Shown here one piece after another: positions 16,999-63,880 of a stretch of DNA of 64,000 nt. Made by a program: the position numbers and the translations under genes. The stretch is from Saccostrea echinata. Its lineage: Eukaryota. The DNA is taken from positions 9,734,001 to 9,798,000 of the forward strand of contig NW_026889757.1 of assembly GCF_033153115.1 (NCBI RefSeq). Direction: 5' to 3'. Below the pieces are notes generated by a model. It ran no database searches. It was given only the letters and a program-made list of their open reading frames with translations, and was not told the origin of the DNA. Position 1 is the first letter of the stretch; each line of letters starts with the position of its first letter.

Positions 16999-19414
16999 TA
17001 ATTTTCATATGTTTGAACTTAAATATAATACAAACCTGCAATTTTTTATGCACATATGCGAAATAAACCTCAAGATATTCAAAATCAAAATTTTGACTTA
17101 AGTCTGTTCTCAGTTTATGGTCTTGAGGCCAGGATCTCATCTCTGTTTTCAGTTAAGAGATCCATATTGGCTCTGCCCACAAGTTGTATTGTTTAAATGG
17201 ACGTTTGAACATCATCACTGTTCGTTATCGTCACAATTCATTTAATTTATCATTAATTTTCATTTTTTCTTTTATACTAAATAAAATTTAAAATCTTTTA
17301 AAATTAATTTAAAATCTTGGTTTAAGCTGTCCTTTTTGTATGCAAAATCCCAGTTAACATACATGTATTCAATCATCATTTATGTTCATTACCTACAAAA
17401 AATGAATTAAGTACAAGTCTCTGCAAGAATCAGGCAAAAGGTGAATCATGAGGGTTCTCAGAATCAGATGATTTTCAACACATAGATTTCTCTTGCGCTA
17501 TAAACCATGTATGGAAAGTGAAAAAAGTTTTGGGTCATGGTTACTATGGAAACATGGCTTAAGAAATTTCCCTAGCAACCAGTGAATTTTCCATGTGTTT
17601 GGATAAAAAAATCACTGATCTTCAGGGCTTGAAATTGATTGTGAATATTTAAGAATTTCTTCTTATTTATTCTCATCGTAAAGACAAAAATTTAAAGTGT
17701 TTTCACAATGCATTGCATAGAAATAAGAATTTGAGATATATCTGTACTAGACATGGGTAGATATGCATGTTTTGTGTTTTTTTGCTGATTCAGCATTTTT
17801 GTTGATTTTGGTACTTTTCAAGGTCTTATAACTCAAACTTCTGGCGTAATACAGGAGTTGTAAATGTTTCGCATAAAAGCAGAGGAATGTCTCTTTTGGA
17901 CATTAAATTCAAAAAGGTGTGTTTTTTGAAAATTCCAATCCGTTGCCTAGCAACAAAAATGGATGTTTTGATAAATAAAAATGGAAAATCGTACAATGTG
18001 CAAACTATTAATCTAATAAACTGCTATCTTAGAGTACAAAAACACAGTTTAAAATAAGAAAATATATCTGAGACAATTTTGCAAACCAAGATTATTGTAA
18101 AGATTCTTATCTCCATGGCAACAGCAAATTTTCCATTGCAACAAAGCAAATAAAGTCACTTTTGGCACATATTTGTGAACAATTGTAAAATATTAATCCA
18201 CAGTTTGGTAGCATATTGCGATTTATCAAATTTGATTATGTAATAAATGTCTTAGCAAAGTACATTTTTAAAATTTTAACCCATTTTTATACTTTTAACC
18301 CATGGCAACAACATTTGAGCACATAAAAACCAAAATATGTTATGGAGAGTTAAGAGCAATTTTCTGTAACCACTTGAACTTTTTTCGGCACGCATGGTCA
18401 CAGATTTTCATGAAACTTTGCTCATTACAATAGTTACATATATAAAAGTTTGTCAACAGAATTTTATATCAATCAAAGTTTGGTTGCTATGTGCCTTGGT
18501 TGTCATGGTAACAGACAGGATGATTTCAACAAAATTTAGATTTTCGGCTACTTTGAATCTTTATTGACCCTTCACAAGCACGTAAAAAACCAAATTGGCC
18601 ATTAACCTATGAAAAAAAACCCAATAAACCTTGTTGCCACTTACTTGTAAAGAAAGTCTATGGAATATATCTCTATATAGGTGGTAACCATGGCTACACT
18701 CAGCATACATTTTATATGCAGAAAAACGCTCTGTATTTTCTTATTATAGGAATTACATGACTCAACTCAATCGCCAGTGATAAAAAAGAAAAATACTTGA
18801 CCTTATGAAAAAAAATCTTTTTAGCAATATTATTCTAACAATGAAAATATGAGTTGCCAAGATGACACAGCATAGTACCACAATTTGTTATAACCCAGCA
18901 AACAAAGATATGGGTTATAAAGGAATCACCTGTCTGTCTGTCTCTGTGTCCTTTTGTAAGTGCAATCATGTCCGGGTCATAACTTTGTAATGCTTTGTAA
19001 TGTGGAAACATTACAAGTTCATTCTTGATTGAAAAATTGTTAATAATCTGAGGGTGTATCTCAACTTTTACCCAAGGTCATTTCAGCTAGTTCAAGGTCA
19101 CTAGCAGTTAAAAGTGTAACGTTCATGTCTTGTCTACAACTGTATAACTGTATAAAATGGGACACTCAACATGCTCAAAAGTGCCATTTTTCAAACTTTA
19201 GGGCATGTTGTCACAGTGAGACTTGGCAACCAATATTTGCTTGATGGTATTAATGCTTAATGGTACTAAATTTAGGCTGAATCATGTCAGTTGGAATGGA
19301 AAAAAGTTGTTTAGCAATGTAATTAACCATACATTTTGGGGGTGTAAGAAAAAAAATCAAACATTGTTTCATTTGTTACCATGTCAAGAAGTCTCCCTCT
19401 CTATATATAATCTA

Positions 19415-23648: not shown

Positions 23649-26600
23649 ATAATTCTGTATATCAGTTTTTGATTTCAATGAACGGTGTTGCCATGGTTAC
23701 TAAAAATAGAAATTTCTGTAAAATACTTTCAAAATGCTACTCTTCCTACAATTTTGATCTGATTTCATTATAACTTGGCACACAAGTAGACTATACTAAG
23801 ATACATAATTCTGTTTATCGGTTTTTGATTTCAATGAACAGTGTTGCAATGGTTAGTAAAAATAGAAATTTCTGTGAAATACATTCAAAAAGCTACTCCT
23901 TCTACTGTTTTGATCTCTTTAAATATAACTTGACACATAAACTACACAAGATACATAATTCTGTGTATCCGTTTTTGATTTGGATGAACGGTGTTGCCAT
24001 GGTTACTAAAAATAAAAATTTTCTTGAAATACTTTCAAAATGCTACTCCTCCTACAGTTTTGGTCTGATTTTAGTCTAACTTAACACACGAGTAGACTAC
24101 ACTAAGATACATAATTCTTTTTACCAGTTTTTGATTTGGATGAACGGTGTTGCCATGGTTACTAAAAATAGAAATTTCCTTGAAATACTTTCAAAATGCT
24201 ACTCCTCCTACAGTTTTAATCTCATTTCAATATAACTTGGCACACAAATAGACTACACAAAGCTACATAATTCTGTGTATTTTTTTGATTTGGATGAACG
24301 GTGTTGCCATGGTTACTAAAAATAGAAATTTCCTTGAAATACTTTCAAAATGCTACTCCTCCTACATGTTTTGTCTGATTTCAGTATAACTCGGCATACA
24401 AGTAGACTACACTGAGATACATAATTGTCATTATTGCTTTTTGATTTTGTTGAATGATGTTGCCATGGTTACTTAAATCGAAATTTCTGTAATTTTTTTT
24501 TAAAAGGCTACTCCTCCAAGAGTTTTATTCTGATTGCAATAAATCTGGCCACAAAACAGACTAAACTAAGGATCATTATTCTATTCATTGCTGTTGCAAA
24601 GTTTCAAGTCTAAGTCCTTTATAAGTACAAGTAGAGCTACAGTCTCATCAGAGACTTCTGGTTCAATTAAGAGCTGTGTACTAGAAATGAACATGACACT
24701 TTTCCTGGAAGCGACCTTGACCTTGCCAAAATGACCTTGAATAAATATGAAGACACATCCCTGAATCATTAGCAATATTTGTTTCAGGTATGGGATTCGA
24801 ATGTTTAATCATTTCAAGATGTAGACAGGACACTAGGGCTGGGCAAAATATCGTTATTTCGGTATGTTGCAATCCAATGACAAAACATATCGTATTGCAA
24901 TACGATATACTGGCAAAATGCTTGAACTCGGGAAATCTATTATTAAATTTAAAAAAAAAAGTTGTCGGAAAGGTCTGTAGTTAAGCCAAACAGTAAGACA
25001 GTGCATAACTGTAATTAAATCAATATGATTTTTTCCTTTTTGGTTACTTAACACAGATATGTACATTGTGCATGTAAATGGAAGTTAATATAATAAGAAA
25101 AGGCCATTTTGATTTTCGTTCAAAATTTTGCAATACATATTGCAATACAGTTAAAAATATTGCAATATATTGCAAAACGAAAGTTCTGGCCAATACCCGT
25201 CTTACAGGACAAAATGTGTACATTTTTCAAAATTGACTATGAACTTGATCAAATGACCTTACGTCAAAATCATGACATACTTTAAGGTCATAATCAATTT
25301 TTCGATGAAGTATGAACATCCAATACTTTCCATTAGAAAATAAGACCAGGCACAAATTTAACATTTTTTTCCGCCAGTGGTCTTCATTTGCTAGAATTAT
25401 CATGGGTCAAGACCATGACACACTCTTTGCTCACATGCAATCTATCAAAAATGAACTTCTAAATGGTTCTCCATTACAAAGTTATGTGATCTGGACAGAT
25501 ATTTTAAACTTTTTCTTGTAGTGATCTTGATCTTGCTGGAATGACCTTGGGTTAAGGTTTGAACATACCACTGGGGCATAAATTTTTTTTGTCAAGCATG
25601 AACTTACAATATTTCTCCATAACGAAATGTGGTCAGGACACGAATTATACATTTTTTTTTATAAAGGATCTTGAACTTTATCATCTGACATTGAATGAAG
25701 AACATGATACACCTACATGTCTTAAACAATCTCTGTATGAAGTTTGATATCCGATATGCCTTCATAAAAAAGTTATAGACCAGACACGAATTTTACACTA
25801 TTTACTGCCAAAGACCTTGAACTAGCTGAAATGACCTTGGGTTAAACAAAGTCAAAATTCAACCTCAGATTATAAACAATCGTTTTATCAAGAATGAACT
25901 TGCAGTCTTTCCCCATTACAAAGTTATGACCCCATCATGATTGCACAGACAAAAGAATACAGAGACAGACAGACAAAGTGTTTCCTATATACCCCAGTCT
26001 TTGTTTGCTGGGTTATAACTATGGCACAAATGATTTGTTATCATGGCAGTCGATATTTTAATTGTTAGAATAATATTGCAATAACATCTTTTCATAAATT
26101 AAGATTAAGTTAAGTCTCGAGCTCCCCTAATAAGAAAATACTGAGCGTTTTTCTGCATATAAAATGTATGCTGAGTGTAGCCATGGTTACCACCTATACA
26201 GAGATATATTCCAAAGACTTTCTTTACATAATAAGTGGCAACAAGCTTTTTTGGTTTTTTTATCATAGGTAAATGGCCAATTTGGTTTTTTACGTGCTTG
26301 TGAAGGGTCAATAAAGATTCAAAGTAGCCGAAAATCTAAATTTTGTTGAAATCATCCTGTCTGTTACCATGACAACCAAGGCACATAGCAACCAAACTTT
26401 GATTGATATAAAATTCTCTTGTCAAACATTATATATGTAACTATTATAATGAGCAAAGTTTCATGAAAATCGGTGACCATGCGTGCCAAAAAAAAGTTCA
26501 AGTGGTTACAGAAAATTGCTCTTAACTCTCCAAAACATATTTTGGTTCTTATGTGTTCAAATGTTGTTGCCATGGGTTAAAAGTATAAAAATGGGTTAAA

Positions 26601-27687
26601 GTTATAAAAATGTACTTTGCTAGGACATTTATAACATAAACAAATTTGATTAATCGCAATATGCTACCAAACTGTGGATTAATATTTTACAATTGTTCAG
26701 TAATATGTGCCAAAAGTGACTTTATTTGTTTTGTTGCAATGGAAAATTTGCTGTTGCCATGGAGATAAGTATCTTTACAATAATCTTGGTTTGCAAAATT
26801 GTCTCAGATATATTTTCTTATTTTAAACTGTGTTTTTGTACTCTCAGATAGCAGTTTATTAGATTAATAGTTTGCACATTGTACGATTTTCCATTTTTAT
26901 TTATCAAAACATCCATTTTTGTTGCTAAGCAACAGATTGGAATTTTCAAAAACACACCTTTTTGAATTTAATGTCCAAAAGAGACATTCCTCTGCTTTTA
27001 TGCGAAAAATTTACAACTCCTGTATTATACCAGAAGTTTGACTTATAAGACCTTGAAAAGTACCAAAATCATCAAAAATGCTGAATCAGCAAAAAACACA
27101 AAACATACATATCTACCCATGTCTAGCACAGATATATCTCAAATTCTTATTTCTATGTGAAAACACTTTAAATTTTTGTCTTTACGATAAGAATAAATAA
27201 GAATAAATCTAAATATTCACAATCAATTTCAAGCCATAAAGATTAGTGATTTTTTTGTCCATACACATGGAAAATTGACTGGTTGCTAGGGAAATTTCTT
27301 ACGCCATGTTTCCATAGTAACCATGACCCAAAACTTTTTTCACTTTCCATACATGGTTTATAGCGCAAGAGAAATCTATGGGTTGAAAATCGTCTGATTT
27401 TAAGAACCCTCATGATTCACTGTCAAACCTACTTTGCCTGATTCTTACAGACACTTGTACTTAAGTAATTGCAATATCAATAACATATCATGAAAGAGTT
27501 GATAAATCTCAGATTAGGCTTTAAATTTAAGAAAAATCAAAGAGAACATGAATTAAAAATATGACTAAAAATATATGTTGTACAAATTTTACTATATGCG
27601 TTATTGTTTGTGTATTATTTACCATTGTTTAATAGCATAGATCAAATGAAAAGTAAAAGCAAGATGTAGCGACATTTGTGTCATTAC

Positions 27688-29526: not shown

Positions 29527-29910
29527 ATGGAATATTTTGGAAAATCAAAAAATGATGATTATCGAAGATCTCATGGACCAAATCCAGAATATTTTCCCGA
29601 TAATCCAGGAAGGAGAGAACTTCAGAGTTCCAGGAAAACAACTCCCAGTAATACATTTGAAAATTTGAATGGAAACGTAGACAAAATTTCTCAACAAACA
29701 AGATCTGTCGATGGAACAGTCAATGGGAGAAATCTGCCTATTGGTAGTTCAAATGTGTTTTATGGATATGGCGGTCCCTTCCGCTTTGATGACGACACTG
29801 ATGGAAGCTCTGAGACCTATTCCATGCAGGATTTCAAAATTCAACCATGGATGGATAAAATTACGGGTGGCACATTCAAAAAGAACTACATAGATCGAGT
29901 GTCATTTCGG
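29527..29910 (+). CDS. Gene A exon 1: cytoplasmic N-terminus
   Basis: MEYFGKS...YGYGGPF...FKIQPWMDKITGGTFKKNYIDRVSFR|gtaaga. No signal peptide. Homologous to 62867-63277. Confidence 0.88.
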
Positions 29911-32900: not shown

Positions 32901-35900
32901 GATGATCTTCTAATGGGCCTGCACGAAAATAAATTCTAAATGAGAAGATAAACTTTATCTTTCATAGTACTGTCAATTAGTGTTTTTTAATCTTATTTAT
33001 TGAACAAATGTAAAATGTATAATAGTTCATTGTAGTTAATTGCTGCAATATATGTCATTCCTTTAAAGCATTAATTTTTCATATACCATTATCATTTACC
33101 ATTACAATTATTGTAAATGAACATGAAAATGTTTCTGATTGTGATGTCAAATTGAACAGTCAAATATATCATATAAAAAAGAATAATATTGATATTTAAG
33201 CCCTCACTCCATCATAACCCCCAAAGTAGGATGGACGATATTCGGCAGTTTCGAAGCAAGGAAAGTCCAAGTGAAACTGATTCTAAGGGAAGTAAATCGA
33301 GAACTATTGTGACCATTTTGAGCATAATTTCGGGGATCATATTAATCGGATGCATAGCAGGAACACTTGCATATTTTCTGTCACAAAAAGGTATTCATTC
33401 AATGTTCAGTTCCAAATTTGTATTTTTCTTTATACAAATTATAAAAAGGAATGTTCCATTTAATAAATTTTTGACTGAAAATAACAATTATACATGTTTG
33501 TATGTAAATAACCTTCAGTGGACATATCAAAACATTGTTTTGTATACTTTAACATAAATTATTTTTATTTAATTGAAGAAAGTGGAGATACCTCAATAAA
33601 ATATTGTAAGTATAATTTTTTTAATGAATTTTTTTTAATGTATTCTCAAATTAAGCAATAATAATTCTATGTAAATGTACAAGCATTTTGTAAATATATA
33701 AGAGCTGACAGCGATGTTACTTGTTTAACAGATGTAGCAACCGGTGAGCTCAGTTTGAATGAAATCTTCTATGAAGAACTGTCGAATTCATCTTCACAAG
33801 AATTCAAGAATTTGAGCTCCAAATTCTGTGGCGCAGTACGTATATCAAATATTCTCTTTTTCCACCACACCTGAACACTCCAATTATAAATATTTGTATG
33901 AATTATGATAAGCGGTATGTTGATCCATTGGTAAAAGCTAGATTGAGAGAATTTTTGTTCTTATTTCTTTTTTAACAGGCACGCAGTACAGTCATTCTAC
34001 AAAAACATGACCAATTAAGAATTTTTTATGTCGCTTACAAATTTACCGTTGTAATATCTTAACTATAAATTTAAAGATCTATTTCAACTCTAAGACTTAA
34101 CATACACACATGGTTTTATAAATTCTTACCGATATATATGCAGTTCAAGTTTTGATATGAACATAATGTAAAGTTGAAAAACGTATTCCACTGCAAATCT
34201 TAATGTCGCTTCATTTATTTACAAATTTCAAGATGAAATTTTCAGCCGTTCCGAATAGCGTTCCGAATGGTTTGCAATGAATGTTTAAAAAAAGTTTTTT
34301 ATTCTATACAAAAAGAAATCATGCAAACTAAAAAATCGATTTACTTCCGTAACGATTTTGTTTTAAATTTCAAACACAGAATGAAGGTTTAAAAAAGAAC
34401 TGAAACATATCTGAAAGTGACCACGGAATCTAATATCATCGATTCTAATTGCGAGTCAGCTTTTTTTTTAGACAATTACATTTTCGACATAACAAAATTA
34501 ATTAGACAAAAACAGTTGTCTCTCTTAAAAAAATTAACTTCCGTAACGGTAATTCAGGAAAGTTTTAGCATTAAAAGTATAAAAAAAAAAATTTTTTTTT
34601 TGGGAGCGAAATGCTTCACACTTACGTTTTATATCCAGAAGCAAACTATTTCATCTATTGTCGAGAATTTTAACTATTATTGCTGGGAATTAACTTCCAT
34701 AACGATTAACTTCCGTAACGATATTCCCCGAAATTTTAACTTAATTTCGGATTACTGCGAGACTTCATGAATCATACTTAAGCGTTCTCTACTAAACATC
34801 AGAAACGAAATATTGGTCAAATTCAGCTTTCATTATTTAAAAAATAATTAGACTTGATCAGCATTAACTTCCGTAACATTACATTAAAATCAATGGAATA
34901 TTGAAATTGTTAAAAATATATTGAAGTTGATGAAAAAGTTAGCGATACCAGATTTGTGGACAATTCTTTTTTTTTTCAAGTTCACTGATATGTCCTTTAG
35001 TGAATTATGATGTTCATTTTGCTATTTGAAACAATTATTTTTTTCATGTTTTATACCCCCAAATTGGTCCATTTATCGTAGAACGACTGAGTATCGTTTT
35101 TGAAAAAAAAGGGAGGCAGAAAAAATATTTTACTATTTGACAACTTACCTGGAAAAGACTTTGAAAAGCAAAAACAAAAAAGTCCAGACTCGAAAATCCT
35201 ACTTCATGTTTTAAATTAACTACGATGTAACAGTAATTTTTTCTCTCTCCATTTATTCATTATTATTGCAAATCACACTGGATATATATACACGAACAAG
35301 AAATTTAGAACCAAAATTCAATCCGTAGGTATTATTTGTTTTAAATGTTATACAGTTTAATAATTATACCTGTTCAAGGTATGATATGAATAAATATGTG
35401 TGACATTGTATTCAGATATTAAGCACCCTGCATGATGCTGTAGGGTTAACTTATATACTGTTATAGAGAGAGCTTGGTCAGAGCCCCATCCCTGGTAGCT
35501 GTTTTATATATCACTTTTAATGTTATAGGTCTGGGAAATGTTTGTTACTGACACGTTCGGATTAGAAATTCGTGTTTCAAGTCTTCTTAACTTTTCTTGT
35601 CGACATTAATAATTTTTCTAAAGATTACAGAAGCATTGCAAAACTCCACAGAAAACGGGGATAAATACAGACTATGTGAAGTTAGAGATTTCAGGTTAGA
35701 ATCTTTTACATTTCCAAAAATCTTAAGTTCAAGATAAAAGACAATTAGAATTCTCCTAGCAGAGCCATTGTGATTTTTAGTGGGATATTGCTTTATAAAT
35801 ATGTTAAATTTATGAAATATTGCCACAAATGTACGATTATAATTATGGCTCCGATTAAATGCTACTTCCACAGAAACGGGAGCATAATAGTTCGATTCAA

Positions 35901-38900
35901 AGTGTATTACGTTTACACGGCCACTGTCACTATCACCAATGAGACGGTTGAGAAGGATCTGAATAACTCTTTAACATCCAAAGATGCCAATCTCGCACAG
36001 CTTTCAACTTTAGTTATTATAAAAGTGACTTTGAAAATCACAGTCGAAGTGGAGACTTTCCGAAAAGAAAACGATCCTGTTGCAACCAATTCATTACCTT
36101 CTACAACTCCATCCCCAACAACAAAAGCAACTACTATACCGTCAACAGAAAGCACAGGAAGCATATTTTCTTCAGAACCCTCAACTGATGCTACAACAGG
36201 AACAAATATAACAAGAGTAACCACTACAACAACACCGACCACAACAACACCGGCCACAACAACAATACCGATCAGTACAATAACATCGACAACTTCAACA
36301 CCAACCACAACAACAACATCGACCGGTACAACATTAACCACTTTAACAACACCTTCCACCATTACAACACAAATAACTACAAAATCGACACATACAACAA
36401 CACAAACCACTACAACAACAGCAACGGCAGCTACAACACCGTCCACTACAACAACACCGTCCACTACAACAACAACGCCGTCCACTACAGCAACACCGGC
36501 CACTACAACAACACCGACCGCTTCAGCAACTCAATTGACCACAACAACAGCAGCTACCACCACCACAACACCGACCAGTTCAACAATGCCCACCACTACA
36601 ACAACATCTACTACTACATCACCACCCTCTTCAATGATAACGACCAATACAACAACACAGATCACTACAACACTGACTACTACTACAACACCGACCTCTA
36701 CAACAAGACCAACCACTTCTACAACACCGATCACTACGACAACAGCAGCATATATAACAACACCAATGACTGCAACAACAGAGAACACAAACAGTAGTAA
36801 ACTACCGAGGACGACGGAAACATTGGACACCACAACCGAAGGCACAAAATTGAACATTACAACAACAACAATGACAAACGAAAACACATCTGACAGTGAA
36901 ACGCAAACGTCTTCGTCAAACACTGCGATGTCAACTGAAAGAATGACACTAACTACAACTACAGATAGTACAACACTGGTAACCACTGAAACAGAAATCA
37001 TGACAGAAAAAACAATACCGGTGACAGCTAAAACAGAAAGGACGACAGAAAGTTCAATACCGGCAACACTAAACTCAACTGAGAGTATAAAGCCAACGAC
37101 TACAACAGTAGAAGATATCATGACTTCCACCGAAGGAACAACGCTATCGATGACAATCACAGCAGAAAGAAAAATAGATACGGCATCACCAGACGAGACT
37201 TCAAAGCCGACGACTACAACAGAAACAAAAAGTACAACAGACAGTACAACACCATTGACTTCTTTGGCATCATCAACCGACAGTACAATAACACAGACTT
37301 CAATAGCAACAGTAAGCACCGTCTCTACGGAGCCATCAACGAAAAGTACAACATCAGAATCGACATCAAAAATTGAAAGCTCAACATCTACAGAAATGTC
37401 AACCAACAGTACAAAACTAACAACGCCAACAACAGAGATCATTACATCTAAAGTACCAACAACCAATAATACAGATCAATCGACTTCAATAACAACTGAT
37501 AGCATAACATCTTTTGCATCACCTAGTGCTACATCAAAAATAAACCAAACAACTTCAGAAAGCACAACCGAAAGCACTACAGAAAATATGTCACAAATAT
37601 CTACAACTGTGTCAGCAGATAGCACAACTCGCGTTATAACACCAACAATGGAGACGACTTCTAGGACACAGGAATCAACGCAATGTAACGATTGTGTCAC
37701 AGATTCTACAGTAGACACAACAGCTTCATCAGACTTTACAGTTCAAAGTACACTTGAAACAACTGCTGCTGTAGTCATGGAATATACAGCAGGTTTGTTT
37801 TCATTGATTGGTATAAAGGTCACTTAAATTATACTGTTTTCTCTAAAAGGCAATTTTTAAAAGGAATCTTCTTATGTGTTTATCTTGTTAAATTCATACT
37901 TTACTATTCATGATTCTTACGTTTGTAGTGCCGTTATTTTGTTAATCGCCATAGATATTCATAATCAAGGTAACCCCTGATAATTACTGTACAATTTGTT
38001 GATTCCATGAGATAATAATTTTTATATGCACCAGCTCTTGTGTGGTAATATTTACTCTGCGTCAATCTTACATCCTAATAATATAGTAACCTATAGTTAT
38101 GATTTAAATTCTTCTGTCACATGTGGTCCATTTTTAATAACTTTAATTTTCGAAGAACTTACATCTTTGTCCTCCATAACTGTTCAACACAAAAGATAAA
38201 CAAAACAAACCATTTAATACATAATGTAAATTAAAACTTAAACTTTCAACAATTCTTGAAAGGCATGCGACAAATGATTAAATAGGACTTTTTGTTTTGA
38301 ATATAATTTATTATAATGTTTTTTCTTTGTTATCGTCTCAGACGTCAGAGTCCCGAGGATCACTGCAATCGTCGGGGAAACTACTACAGCACAAGGATGT
38401 ATAGTCATCCCACACGGCGAGTGGCTGCATGTAGATCTATCAATCGATTATAACAGTTCATCACACGTCATTGCAAAGTTGGATCACAACAAAATATTTC
38501 AAAAACCGACTTCTGTTGACAGATTTAACGGTAGCATTGACATGAATGGTGATGATATTGTTGTTACATTAACGGTTGATTTAACATCACCAAAATCAGA
38601 CTTTTGCACATGGGACGGCCGATACATCGTCACATGCTCCGTGATTATGAATGATACAATGCAAACCAGACAAACTAATGGGAGTCAGATTTCAATTACA
38701 GGTAATAACTTCTTTTAAGTGGGAAGGGATATGCATTACGATATCGCTAACTATAACAAAGCAGACTGTGGGAAGTTTTCTACCGAGAGATGATGACTGA
38801 AATATTTTGGGCCAAAAGTAGACCAATTACGTCAATATAACCAGACTAGTTCATATTAATTCTCAAAAGTTTGAATCTTTTATATACGGTATAGCGGTAT

Positions 38901-62866: not shown

Positions 62867-63277
62867 ATGGAATCTTTAGGTAAGTCGGGAAAAGTCGATT
62901 TTCAATCTTTTCGTCACACGAATACAGAAGATTCCGTCGGTAGGTCAAGGATATATGAATATCGAAGTTCTCGTCGGACACCTACGGATTCCTTTGGTAA
63001 TTCAGCAGGGAACGGATTTCGGGATTCCTCACAAAGTAGACCAGTGCATTCATTTGAAGGACCCTCCAATAACAGTGGAACCAATGTAAAGCCTCCTCGG
63101 AGTAGTGTTTACTATGGATATGGTGGTCCTTTTTCTTTAGATGACGATTTTGACAGAAGGTCGGATAGTACACAGATGTCGTCTGATTCTATTAGAAATT
63201 TTAAAATCCAACCTTGGATGACAAAAATTACTGGGGGAACATTCAAGAGGGACTACATTGACCGTATTTCATTACGG
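62867..63277 (+). CDS. Gene B (paralog of gene A) exon 1: cytoplasmic N-terminus
   Basis: MESLGKS...YGYGGPF...FKIQPWMTKITGGTFKRDYIDRISLR|gtaaga. Same intron position and phase as gene A. Confidence 0.88.
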
Positions 63278-63681: not shown

Positions 63682-63880
63682 CCAACACTACAGCATGACA
63701 CCACAATACTCTGGCAAGACACTCGACAGCTTACAGAAGCAGATGACAGGGAGCCCATTAGAGGGAACTGTAATGAAGAAATTCTTGGTCGAACCACCTT
63801 AACTATCATCTTTATAATTCTTGGGGTGATTTTAGTTGGTATTGTTGGAGCTGTCATTGCATGGTTTTTAGCGATGAAGG
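63682..63880 (+). CDS. Gene B exon 2: TM signal anchor; gene continues beyond the window
   Basis: tag|PTLQH...GRTTLTIIFIILGVILVGIVGAVIAWFLAMK|gtaaaa. Phase 0-1, as in gene A exon 2. Confidence 0.85.

Follow-up and report, generated by a model that had tools for sequence, protein, structure and literature searches.

Motif-bearing exons, transcripts and predicted topology

The window, the whole stretch of 64,000 nucleotides analysed (C8:9734001-9798000 of the Saccostrea echinata genome), is AT-rich eukaryotic DNA (GC 0.27-0.40) and carries exons of two related genes, A and B (Table 1). The exon 1 peptide of gene A is hydrophilic and without cysteine, its C-terminal part reading ...NVFYGYGGPFRFDDDTDGSSETYSMQDFKIQPWMDKITGGTFKKNYIDRVSFR, and it contains two conserved stretches, termed block 1 and block 2. 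A six-frame motif scan of the window revealed that both blocks recur once more, at 63113-63277 on the plus strand, within exon 1 of gene B. The two tails start alike (MEYFGKS in A, aligned with MESLGKS in B), and 11/14 residues of block 1 and 21/26 of block 2 are identical between them. Position 29910 is the end of exon 1 of gene A and not of the motif, which crosses the intron and continues in exon 2 of both genes. The patterns noted in the initial annotation, YGYGGPFxxDDDxD and FKIQPWMxKITGGTFKxxYIDRxSxR, are read in the plus frame of both genes at the positions in Table 1, and its count of 24 identical residues in 31 for the second block is reproduced once the PxLxH of exon 2 is included. 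The SEA-mucin tail motif is a conserved stretch of ~32 residues in an intracellular tail that is otherwise predicted to be disordered.

Table 1 Features of genes A and B in the window and of paralog C elsewhere on the same contig.
Feature	Position	Strand	Description
Gene A exon 1	29527..29910	+	ATG start, 128-residue tail (predicted cytoplasmic), phase-0 GTAAG donor; ORF and donor read directly
Gene A block 1	29761..29802	+	YGYGGPFRFDDDTD; aromatic/Gly stretch, then acidic cluster
Gene A block 2 (core motif)	29833..29910	+	FKIQPWMDKITGGTFKKNYIDRVSFR
Gene A exon 2	33201..33390	+	PSLHHN (33201-33218), 28-residue linker, TM helix TIVTILSIISGIILIGCIAGTLAYFL (33303-33380)
Gene A micro-exon 3	33579..33605	+	27 nt; with split end codons reads ESGDTSIKYY
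Gene A exon 4	33732..33835	+	First half of SEA; sub-threshold Pfam half domain
Gene A ectodomain exons	35749..47868	+	SEA second half, Thr-rich mucin exon (to 37824), Ig-like exons, CBM_14
Gene B exon 1	62867..63277	+	ATG start, 137-residue tail (predicted cytoplasmic) with both blocks
Gene B block 1	63113..63154	+	YGYGGPFSLDDDFD; from six-frame motif scan
Gene B block 2	63200..63277	+	FKIQPWMTKITGGTFKRDYIDRISLR
Gene B exon 2	63682..63880	+	PTLQHD (63682-63699), linker, TM helix (63796-63870); remainder of B outside window
Paralog C exon 1	C8:5079295-5079726 (L003:1501-1932)	-	From genome search with exon 1 and profile
Paralog C region L003	C8:5077795-5080965		

The exon structure of gene A is matched by contigs from one small run (X1, organism A), which are labelled 'RNA?'. 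These are 100% identical to exon 1 over 29545-29909 and also match exon 2 over 33243-33390. One contig skips 3290 bases with GT..AG ends, joining 29909/10 to 33200/01; the contigs are taken to derive from RNA because this intron-less form is present, the spliced joint being the sole argument for that origin. On this joint, from a single run, the motif is transcribed and spliced as modelled. The acceptor and donor of exon 2 were read directly, and the loose end of the X1 contig behind 33390 corresponds to micro-exon 3 followed by the ATG of exon 4 (33732). The micro-exon, which separates the TM exon from the first SEA exon, has its collinear counterpart in the 'DDEFSVKYY' of a Crassostrea homologue. 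A second run (X2, organism B) contains a 149-nt contig over 29747-29895 with ~91% identity to gene A. The amino-acid changes in organism B (F87L, T97M, Y98D and Q101L, with a compensated indel) all fall in the linker between the blocks, and in residues 103-123 there is one change, which is synonymous.

In exon 2 of both genes ~30 variable residues separate the end of the motif from a single hydrophobic helix, which in gene A is flanked on its N-terminal side by KGSKSR. The features are those of a type II (N-in) single-pass protein: a hydrophilic N-terminus, no signal peptide, one TM segment and extracellular-type domains C-terminal to it. Since the signal peptide is absent and the extracellular-type domains follow the only TM segment, the protein is predicted to be type II and the motif-bearing tail is, by this predicted topology, cytoplasmic. 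The placement of the motif on the cytoplasmic side in the initial annotation agrees with its position N-terminal to the single TM helix, and the order of the domains contradicts a position in the lumen.

Domains of the predicted ectodomain were assigned with Pfam; these searches, like those for relatives, used single exons or database proteins as queries. The SEA domain (PF01390) of gene A is split over exons and its halves score 15.1 and 14.3 bits against a gathering cut-off of 26.4, while collinear Crassostrea homologues pass that cut-off (28.3 and 38.1 bits); exon 4 is collinear with the SEA domain of one that does so, P0034. The Ig-like exons include two V-set matches (25.5 and 22.6 bits) and an Ig_2 match (18.7 bits), and the Cys-rich CBM_14 domain (PF01607) at 47683-47868 scores 44.4 bits against a cut-off of 22.1. 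The ectodomain exons of A (SEA, mucin, Ig and CBM-like) are matched exon by exon in B (L004, L008).

The mucin exon (35749-37824) is a Thr/Ser/Pro-rich single open frame of ~2 kb with a GC skew of -0.35 and an AT skew of +0.36. In the second half of SEA, just upstream in this exon, a GSIIV site resembles the autoproteolytic G/SVVV motif. Further downstream, 39375-41276 and 42825-45999 appear to be duplicates of one exon set within gene A, made up of three Ig-like exons and one that is Cys-rich and chitin-binding-like; the two sets are 20-35% identical, and gene B is closest to the first.

Distribution and conservation of the motif

The Saccostrea genome (923 Mb, 425 contigs) was searched with exon 1 of gene A and then with a 15-sequence profile, and both searches found carriers at only three loci, namely A, B and a third gene, paralog C. 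The latter lies on the same contig as A and B, 4.7 Mb away and on the opposite strand. It keeps WMDKILGGTFKRNYLDRQSFR, the remainder of its exon 1 being unalignable with A, and its junction, EWMDKILGGTFKRNYLDRQSFR/ASLRLN (the slash marks the intron), has the intron position of A and B. Further along come TM and SEA exons, a mucin exon coding for ~1000 residues (L009:5624-8899) and a pair of Ig-like exons; CBM_14 was not seen in the 30 kb searched downstream (L009, L006 and L007, excluding a 10-kb gap between L006 and L007).

Outside this genome, exon 1 of gene A recovered three short Logan proteins in a word search, and a HMMER scan of 1.84 billion representative proteins with a six-sequence profile gave 10 matches, nine of which are true relatives. 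Most of these relatives are exon 1 sequences called on genomic contigs, in which the frame continues past the same donor (R/VR..., GTAAG). The tenth match, a repetitive bacterial protein, was rejected as spurious. The named members, traced by cluster look-ups and word search, are Magallana/Crassostrea gigas A0A8W8IX23 (= LOC105324043, 2193 aa, entered as 'Ig-like domain-containing protein'), A0A8W8IRX1 (entered as 'SEA domain-containing protein'), A0A8W8IPZ8 and K1QA24, together with C. angulata LOC128179545; all named relatives are from Crassostrea/Magallana and uncharacterised. Judged on the named matches only, the motif appears to be restricted to oysters. A literature search returned no paper on this family and none on LOC105324043. 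A word search with residues 105-180 of P0034 for relatives of 1206-3838 aa gave no match, P0034 itself being filed under a 175-aa cluster representative. The UniProt name 'Zonadhesin' of K1QA24 (P0081), a C-type member, is unsupported by its sequence as read by eye (tail motif, partial SEA, mucin) and looks like a label carried over from mucin-like composition.

In A0A8W8IX23 (P0034) the tail carries FKLQPWMDKITGGTFRKEYLDKNLFRPTLQHD, with the exon junction FR/PTLQHD as in gene B, and a single annotated protein combines the motif tail, TM segment, SEA (28.3 bits), Ig domains and a C-terminal CBM_14 (29.1 bits). An alignment of 15 sequences has seven invariant columns (D92, W108, I112, G114, Y121, D123 and R128) and five that are nearly invariant (D110, K111, G115, T116 and F117); six of the former and all five of the latter lie inside W108-R128. 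The core consensus is QPWMDKIxGGTF[KR][KR]xY[LI]D[RK]x[SL]FR[PA][ST]L, with its end ~30 residues short of the membrane. Ahead of it, members of the A/B subfamily have the YGYGGPF/acidic block, which is conserved in A/B-type relatives (P0001-3, P0023) and loose in the C-type. All carriers with readable downstream sequence have a TM segment followed by SEA/mucin and/or Ig domains. The motif co-occurs only with this architecture in those carriers, in keeping with the earlier proposal that it defines the family; it is not confined to two copies, since it is also present in the third paralog, in the transcript of a second species and in Crassostrea, with an omega of ~0.07.

Codon comparison of A with B by Nei-Gojobori counts gave pN 0.113 and pS 0.688 for block 2, and pN 0.174 and pS 0.75 for block 1 (17-codon span, 29755-29805). 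The tail upstream of block 1 has pN 0.391 and pS 0.648, and the exon 1 peptides are 47% identical over 144 residues (E 5e-34), so that the initial description of the tails as mostly divergent is roughly right. At synonymous sites of block 2, 11/16 are changed, which amounts to saturation, and the omega calculated for the blocks (~0.07) is on that account approximate only. The seven synonymous codon pairs listed in the initial annotation as signs of purifying selection (TTC/TTT, ATT/ATC, CCA/CCT, ACG/ACT, GGT/GGG, GGC/GGA and CGA/CGT) are all present, as are AAA/AAG, ATA/ATT and GAT/GAC, and the low pN of block 2 against its pS upholds that interpretation.

Every exon of gene A was also aligned with its counterpart in gene B, the rest of B being taken from the genome (L004, L008). 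Block 2 is the best-conserved 26-residue segment of the whole protein pair, the next best (18/26) being in an Ig exon. Against a background identity of 0.45, 21/26 has P = 2e-4 for one segment, which is weak after correction for the ~1500 segments compared; the excess is nevertheless beyond chance because the 15-sequence alignment concentrates its conserved columns in W108-R128. Purifying selection on the protein sequence of the motif is strong.

Similarity between A and B might also have arisen by recent gene conversion, from an element acting at the nucleotide level, such as a splice enhancer or an RNA structure, or from an antisense gene. The block does adjoin the exon 1 donor site, and an antisense ORF at 29752-29901 also matches its counterpart in B, but at 37% compared with 81% in the sense frame, and the motif is kept at the protein level in the distant paralog C and in Crassostrea. 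All three of these origins are contradicted by the saturated synonymous sites; saturation within the block excludes recent conversion and nucleotide-level constraint, and the probability assigned to an origin of this kind is minimal.

One Crassostrea paralog lineage (LOC128179545 type; P0083, P0029 and P0084) has a decayed core motif, HQLRTDNITGGTSKKEYIDMNLYR, with W to R, F to S and R to M replacements. This decay indicates that the motif is dispensable in at least one copy, and the LOC128179545-type copy may have been released from constraint. In isoform X2 of this type the TM segment is directly followed by Ig domains, without SEA or mucin.

Candidate functions of the motif

Searches for a known domain were negative. 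In Pfam the exon 1 peptides of A and B have no match at E<=10 and the two exon 2 peptides none at E<=1, a sequence profile search of the PDB gave nothing at E<=10, and the ESM Atlas contained no usable match for exon 1 of gene A or for residues 60-160 of P0030. Motif classes were compared by regular expressions over 10 tails, with patterns taken from general knowledge and not from a curated motif library. The ITAM pattern (Yxx[LI] x6-8 Yxx[LI]) is absent from the 10 tails, and the ITIM/ITSM pattern ([SIVLT]xYxx[ILV]) is not conserved among them, its single match, in P0027, lying outside the block; the context of the conserved Tyr is xNY[IL]D[RK]. The family does not present a PDZ-binding tail, because its cytoplasmic tail is predicted to be N-terminal and the C-terminus of the protein is the extracellular CBM_14. 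The statement in the initial annotation that the motif corresponds to no recognised ITAM, ITIM or PDZ class holds. Patterns for 14-3-3, TRAF2/6, clathrin-box, LIR, AP2-ear (FxDxF, DPF/W) and PPxY likewise have no conserved match in the 10 tails.

The same comparison bears on whether coat or adaptor proteins recognise the block as a signal for ER export, apical delivery or endocytosis, which would make it a sorting or trafficking element and not a signalling dock. Such a role would suit the cytoplasmic tail of a very large glycoprotein bound for the cell surface, and an acidic Ser-rich cluster of the kind used in acidic-cluster sorting is located just upstream. However, members of the family have no canonical sorting pattern in common: YxxPhi, [DE]xxxL[LI] and NPxY are not conserved in the 10 tails, NPEY being found in gene A alone, at residue 19. 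Known sorting signals are also 4-7 residues long compared with ~30 here, and we consider this function unlikely.

Based on AlphaFold2 models, which were built from shallow alignments (9-15 sequences), the tail is predicted to be disordered apart from small helical turns at the motif. The exon 1 peptide of gene A has a mean pLDDT of 50.8 and one helical turn at 107-110. In Crassostrea P0033 (mean pLDDT 52.9) the TM helix reaches pLDDT 87-98 and the tail is disordered, with the motif blocks scoring highest within it (pLDDT 56-57) and turns at 150-154 and 162-165. The segment after the Gly-Gly pair has a hydrophobic moment of 0.42-0.48 at 170 degrees compared with 0.10-0.20 at 100 degrees, a strand-like periodicity.

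This periodicity raises the question of whether the stretch of ~55 residues formed by block 1, the acidic linker and block 2 is a small self-folding domain and not a linear motif. The candidate fold would be a beta-hairpin with a tight turn at the Gly-Gly and cross-strand pairs W108/Y121, D110/K119 and I112/F117; the invariant Gly-Gly does separate two segments that would turn their conserved residues to the same face, and conservation over more than 20 residues is long for a classical linear motif. Against it, AlphaFold2 predicts no strands here, only helical turns of 4-5 residues at pLDDT 55-60, block 1 is not conserved in C-type members and PDB sequences are without a match. An autonomous fold is accordingly rated as improbable as a sorting function.

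Common to all 10 tails is the spacing W-x3-I-x4-F-x3-Y (1-5-10 and 1-14), together with an [ST]x[RK] site at T116. In calmodulin terms, W108-I112-F117-Y121 fit the 1-5-10 and 1-14 classes in 10/10 tails, and with a net charge of ~+3 the block could serve calmodulin or some other EF-hand protein as a basic amphipathic binding site, or could bind the membrane in-plane. These patterns are loose, though, the 1-14 spacing occurring 2-8 times per tail; the invariant Gly-Gly and the conserved D110 and D123 are atypical of calmodulin-binding helices and argue against a continuous helix, and the second half of the block is low in helical hydrophobic moment. Binding of this type is rated as very unlikely.

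We favour, with a probability of about 0.6, a lineage-restricted short linear docking motif in the disordered N-terminal tail of a small type II family; docking is inferred because the conservation lies within predicted disorder. For a block of 20-30 residues in which W, I, GG, F, Y, D and R are invariant, folding upon contact with a conserved cytosolic partner is the most plausible behaviour. A signalling or cytoskeletal dock is provisionally ranked first, by likeness to MUC1-type tails, followed in order by a mini-domain that folds on its own, a signal for sorting, and binding to calmodulin or the membrane.

The protein would consist of the tail, a signal-anchor helix, SEA, a mucin region, Ig-like repeats and, in the A/B type, CBM_14. 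The motif would act as a recognition element, folding on binding into two short helical turns or strands around the obligatory Gly-Gly turn, so that a single hydrophobic face, made up of the conserved W, I, F and Y, would bind a conserved partner in the cytosol. Docking could in this way couple a chitin- or glycan-binding ectodomain to signalling, the cytoskeleton or sorting. Binding might be regulated through the [ST]x[RK] sites at T116 and S126, an idea weakened because the second site, present in most tails, is not invariant (Leu in some members).

A more specific possibility, which we regard as doubtful, is that the motif is the output module of an unrecognised class of molluscan receptors, namely type II SEA-mucins with VCBP-like Ig and chitin-binding heads, which would recruit a dedicated adaptor or kinase after ligand binding or force-dependent cleavage of SEA. 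If true, this would amount to a signalling pathway in oysters, specific to their lineage, for mucosal immunity or the sensing of chitin.

Related architectures and genomic surroundings

The Crassostrea homologues share with A and B the tail motif, the intron after FR, the TM helix, SEA, mucin, Ig and CBM_14. Outside the motif they are 25-50% identical to the Saccostrea proteins, and they differ in including the LOC128179545 type with its decayed motif. Among vertebrates, enteropeptidase, matriptase and HAT/TMPRSS11 have an N-terminal cytoplasmic tail, a signal anchor and a SEA domain adjoining the membrane. The oyster proteins are predicted to have the topology of these type II SEA proteins but are without the protease domain, their tails have no detectable similarity and the ectodomain is instead of the mucin/Ig/chitin-binding kind.

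MUC1-type mucins combine a SEA and mucin ectodomain with a short, disordered cytoplasmic tail containing conserved docking motifs. MUC1, however, is type I with a C-terminal tail whereas the oyster proteins are predicted to be type II with an N-terminal one, and the MUC1 motifs for beta-catenin, Grb2 and PI3K are absent from the oyster tails. The VCBPs of amphioxus and Ciona resemble the oyster proteins in having Ig V-type domains together with CBM_14 (assigned by Pfam in the oyster proteins). Unlike them, VCBPs are small and secreted, lack TM, SEA, mucin and tail, and have no counterpart of the oyster motif.

In oysters, innate-immune and surface-recognition families are greatly expanded and receptor signalling is little known. 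Going by sequence comparison, the motif appears to be previously undescribed and its host to be an uncharacterised type II SEA-mucin/Ig/chitin-binding family, apparently restricted to oysters. The conserved tail peptide of ~30 residues is a concrete bait for an intracellular partner. It is also a simple marker for annotating a family whose members are now labelled 'uncharacterised', 'SEA domain-containing', 'Ig-like domain-containing' or, wrongly, 'Zonadhesin'. The importance of the motif is specialised, as the family is small and apparently taxon-restricted and its function putative.

Repeats also lie in the sequence around the two genes in the window. A large inverted repeat ~2 kb upstream of gene A (17441-19100 and 25900-27420) has arms 8-9.5 kb apart, including arms of 463 nt (97% complementarity) and 211 nt (95%), with ORF-level matches extending to ~1.6 kb per arm; tandem repeats are found between the arms at ~23.5-24.5 kb. 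Either a transposon bounded by long terminal inverted repeats or an inverted duplication could account for this structure. Dispersed and inverted repeats that share ORF fragments at 50-100% identity occur at 6500-10800, 49300-50100, 53400-53620 and 58200-59620, and the dispersed repeats around A and B are presumably intergenic remnants of transposable elements.
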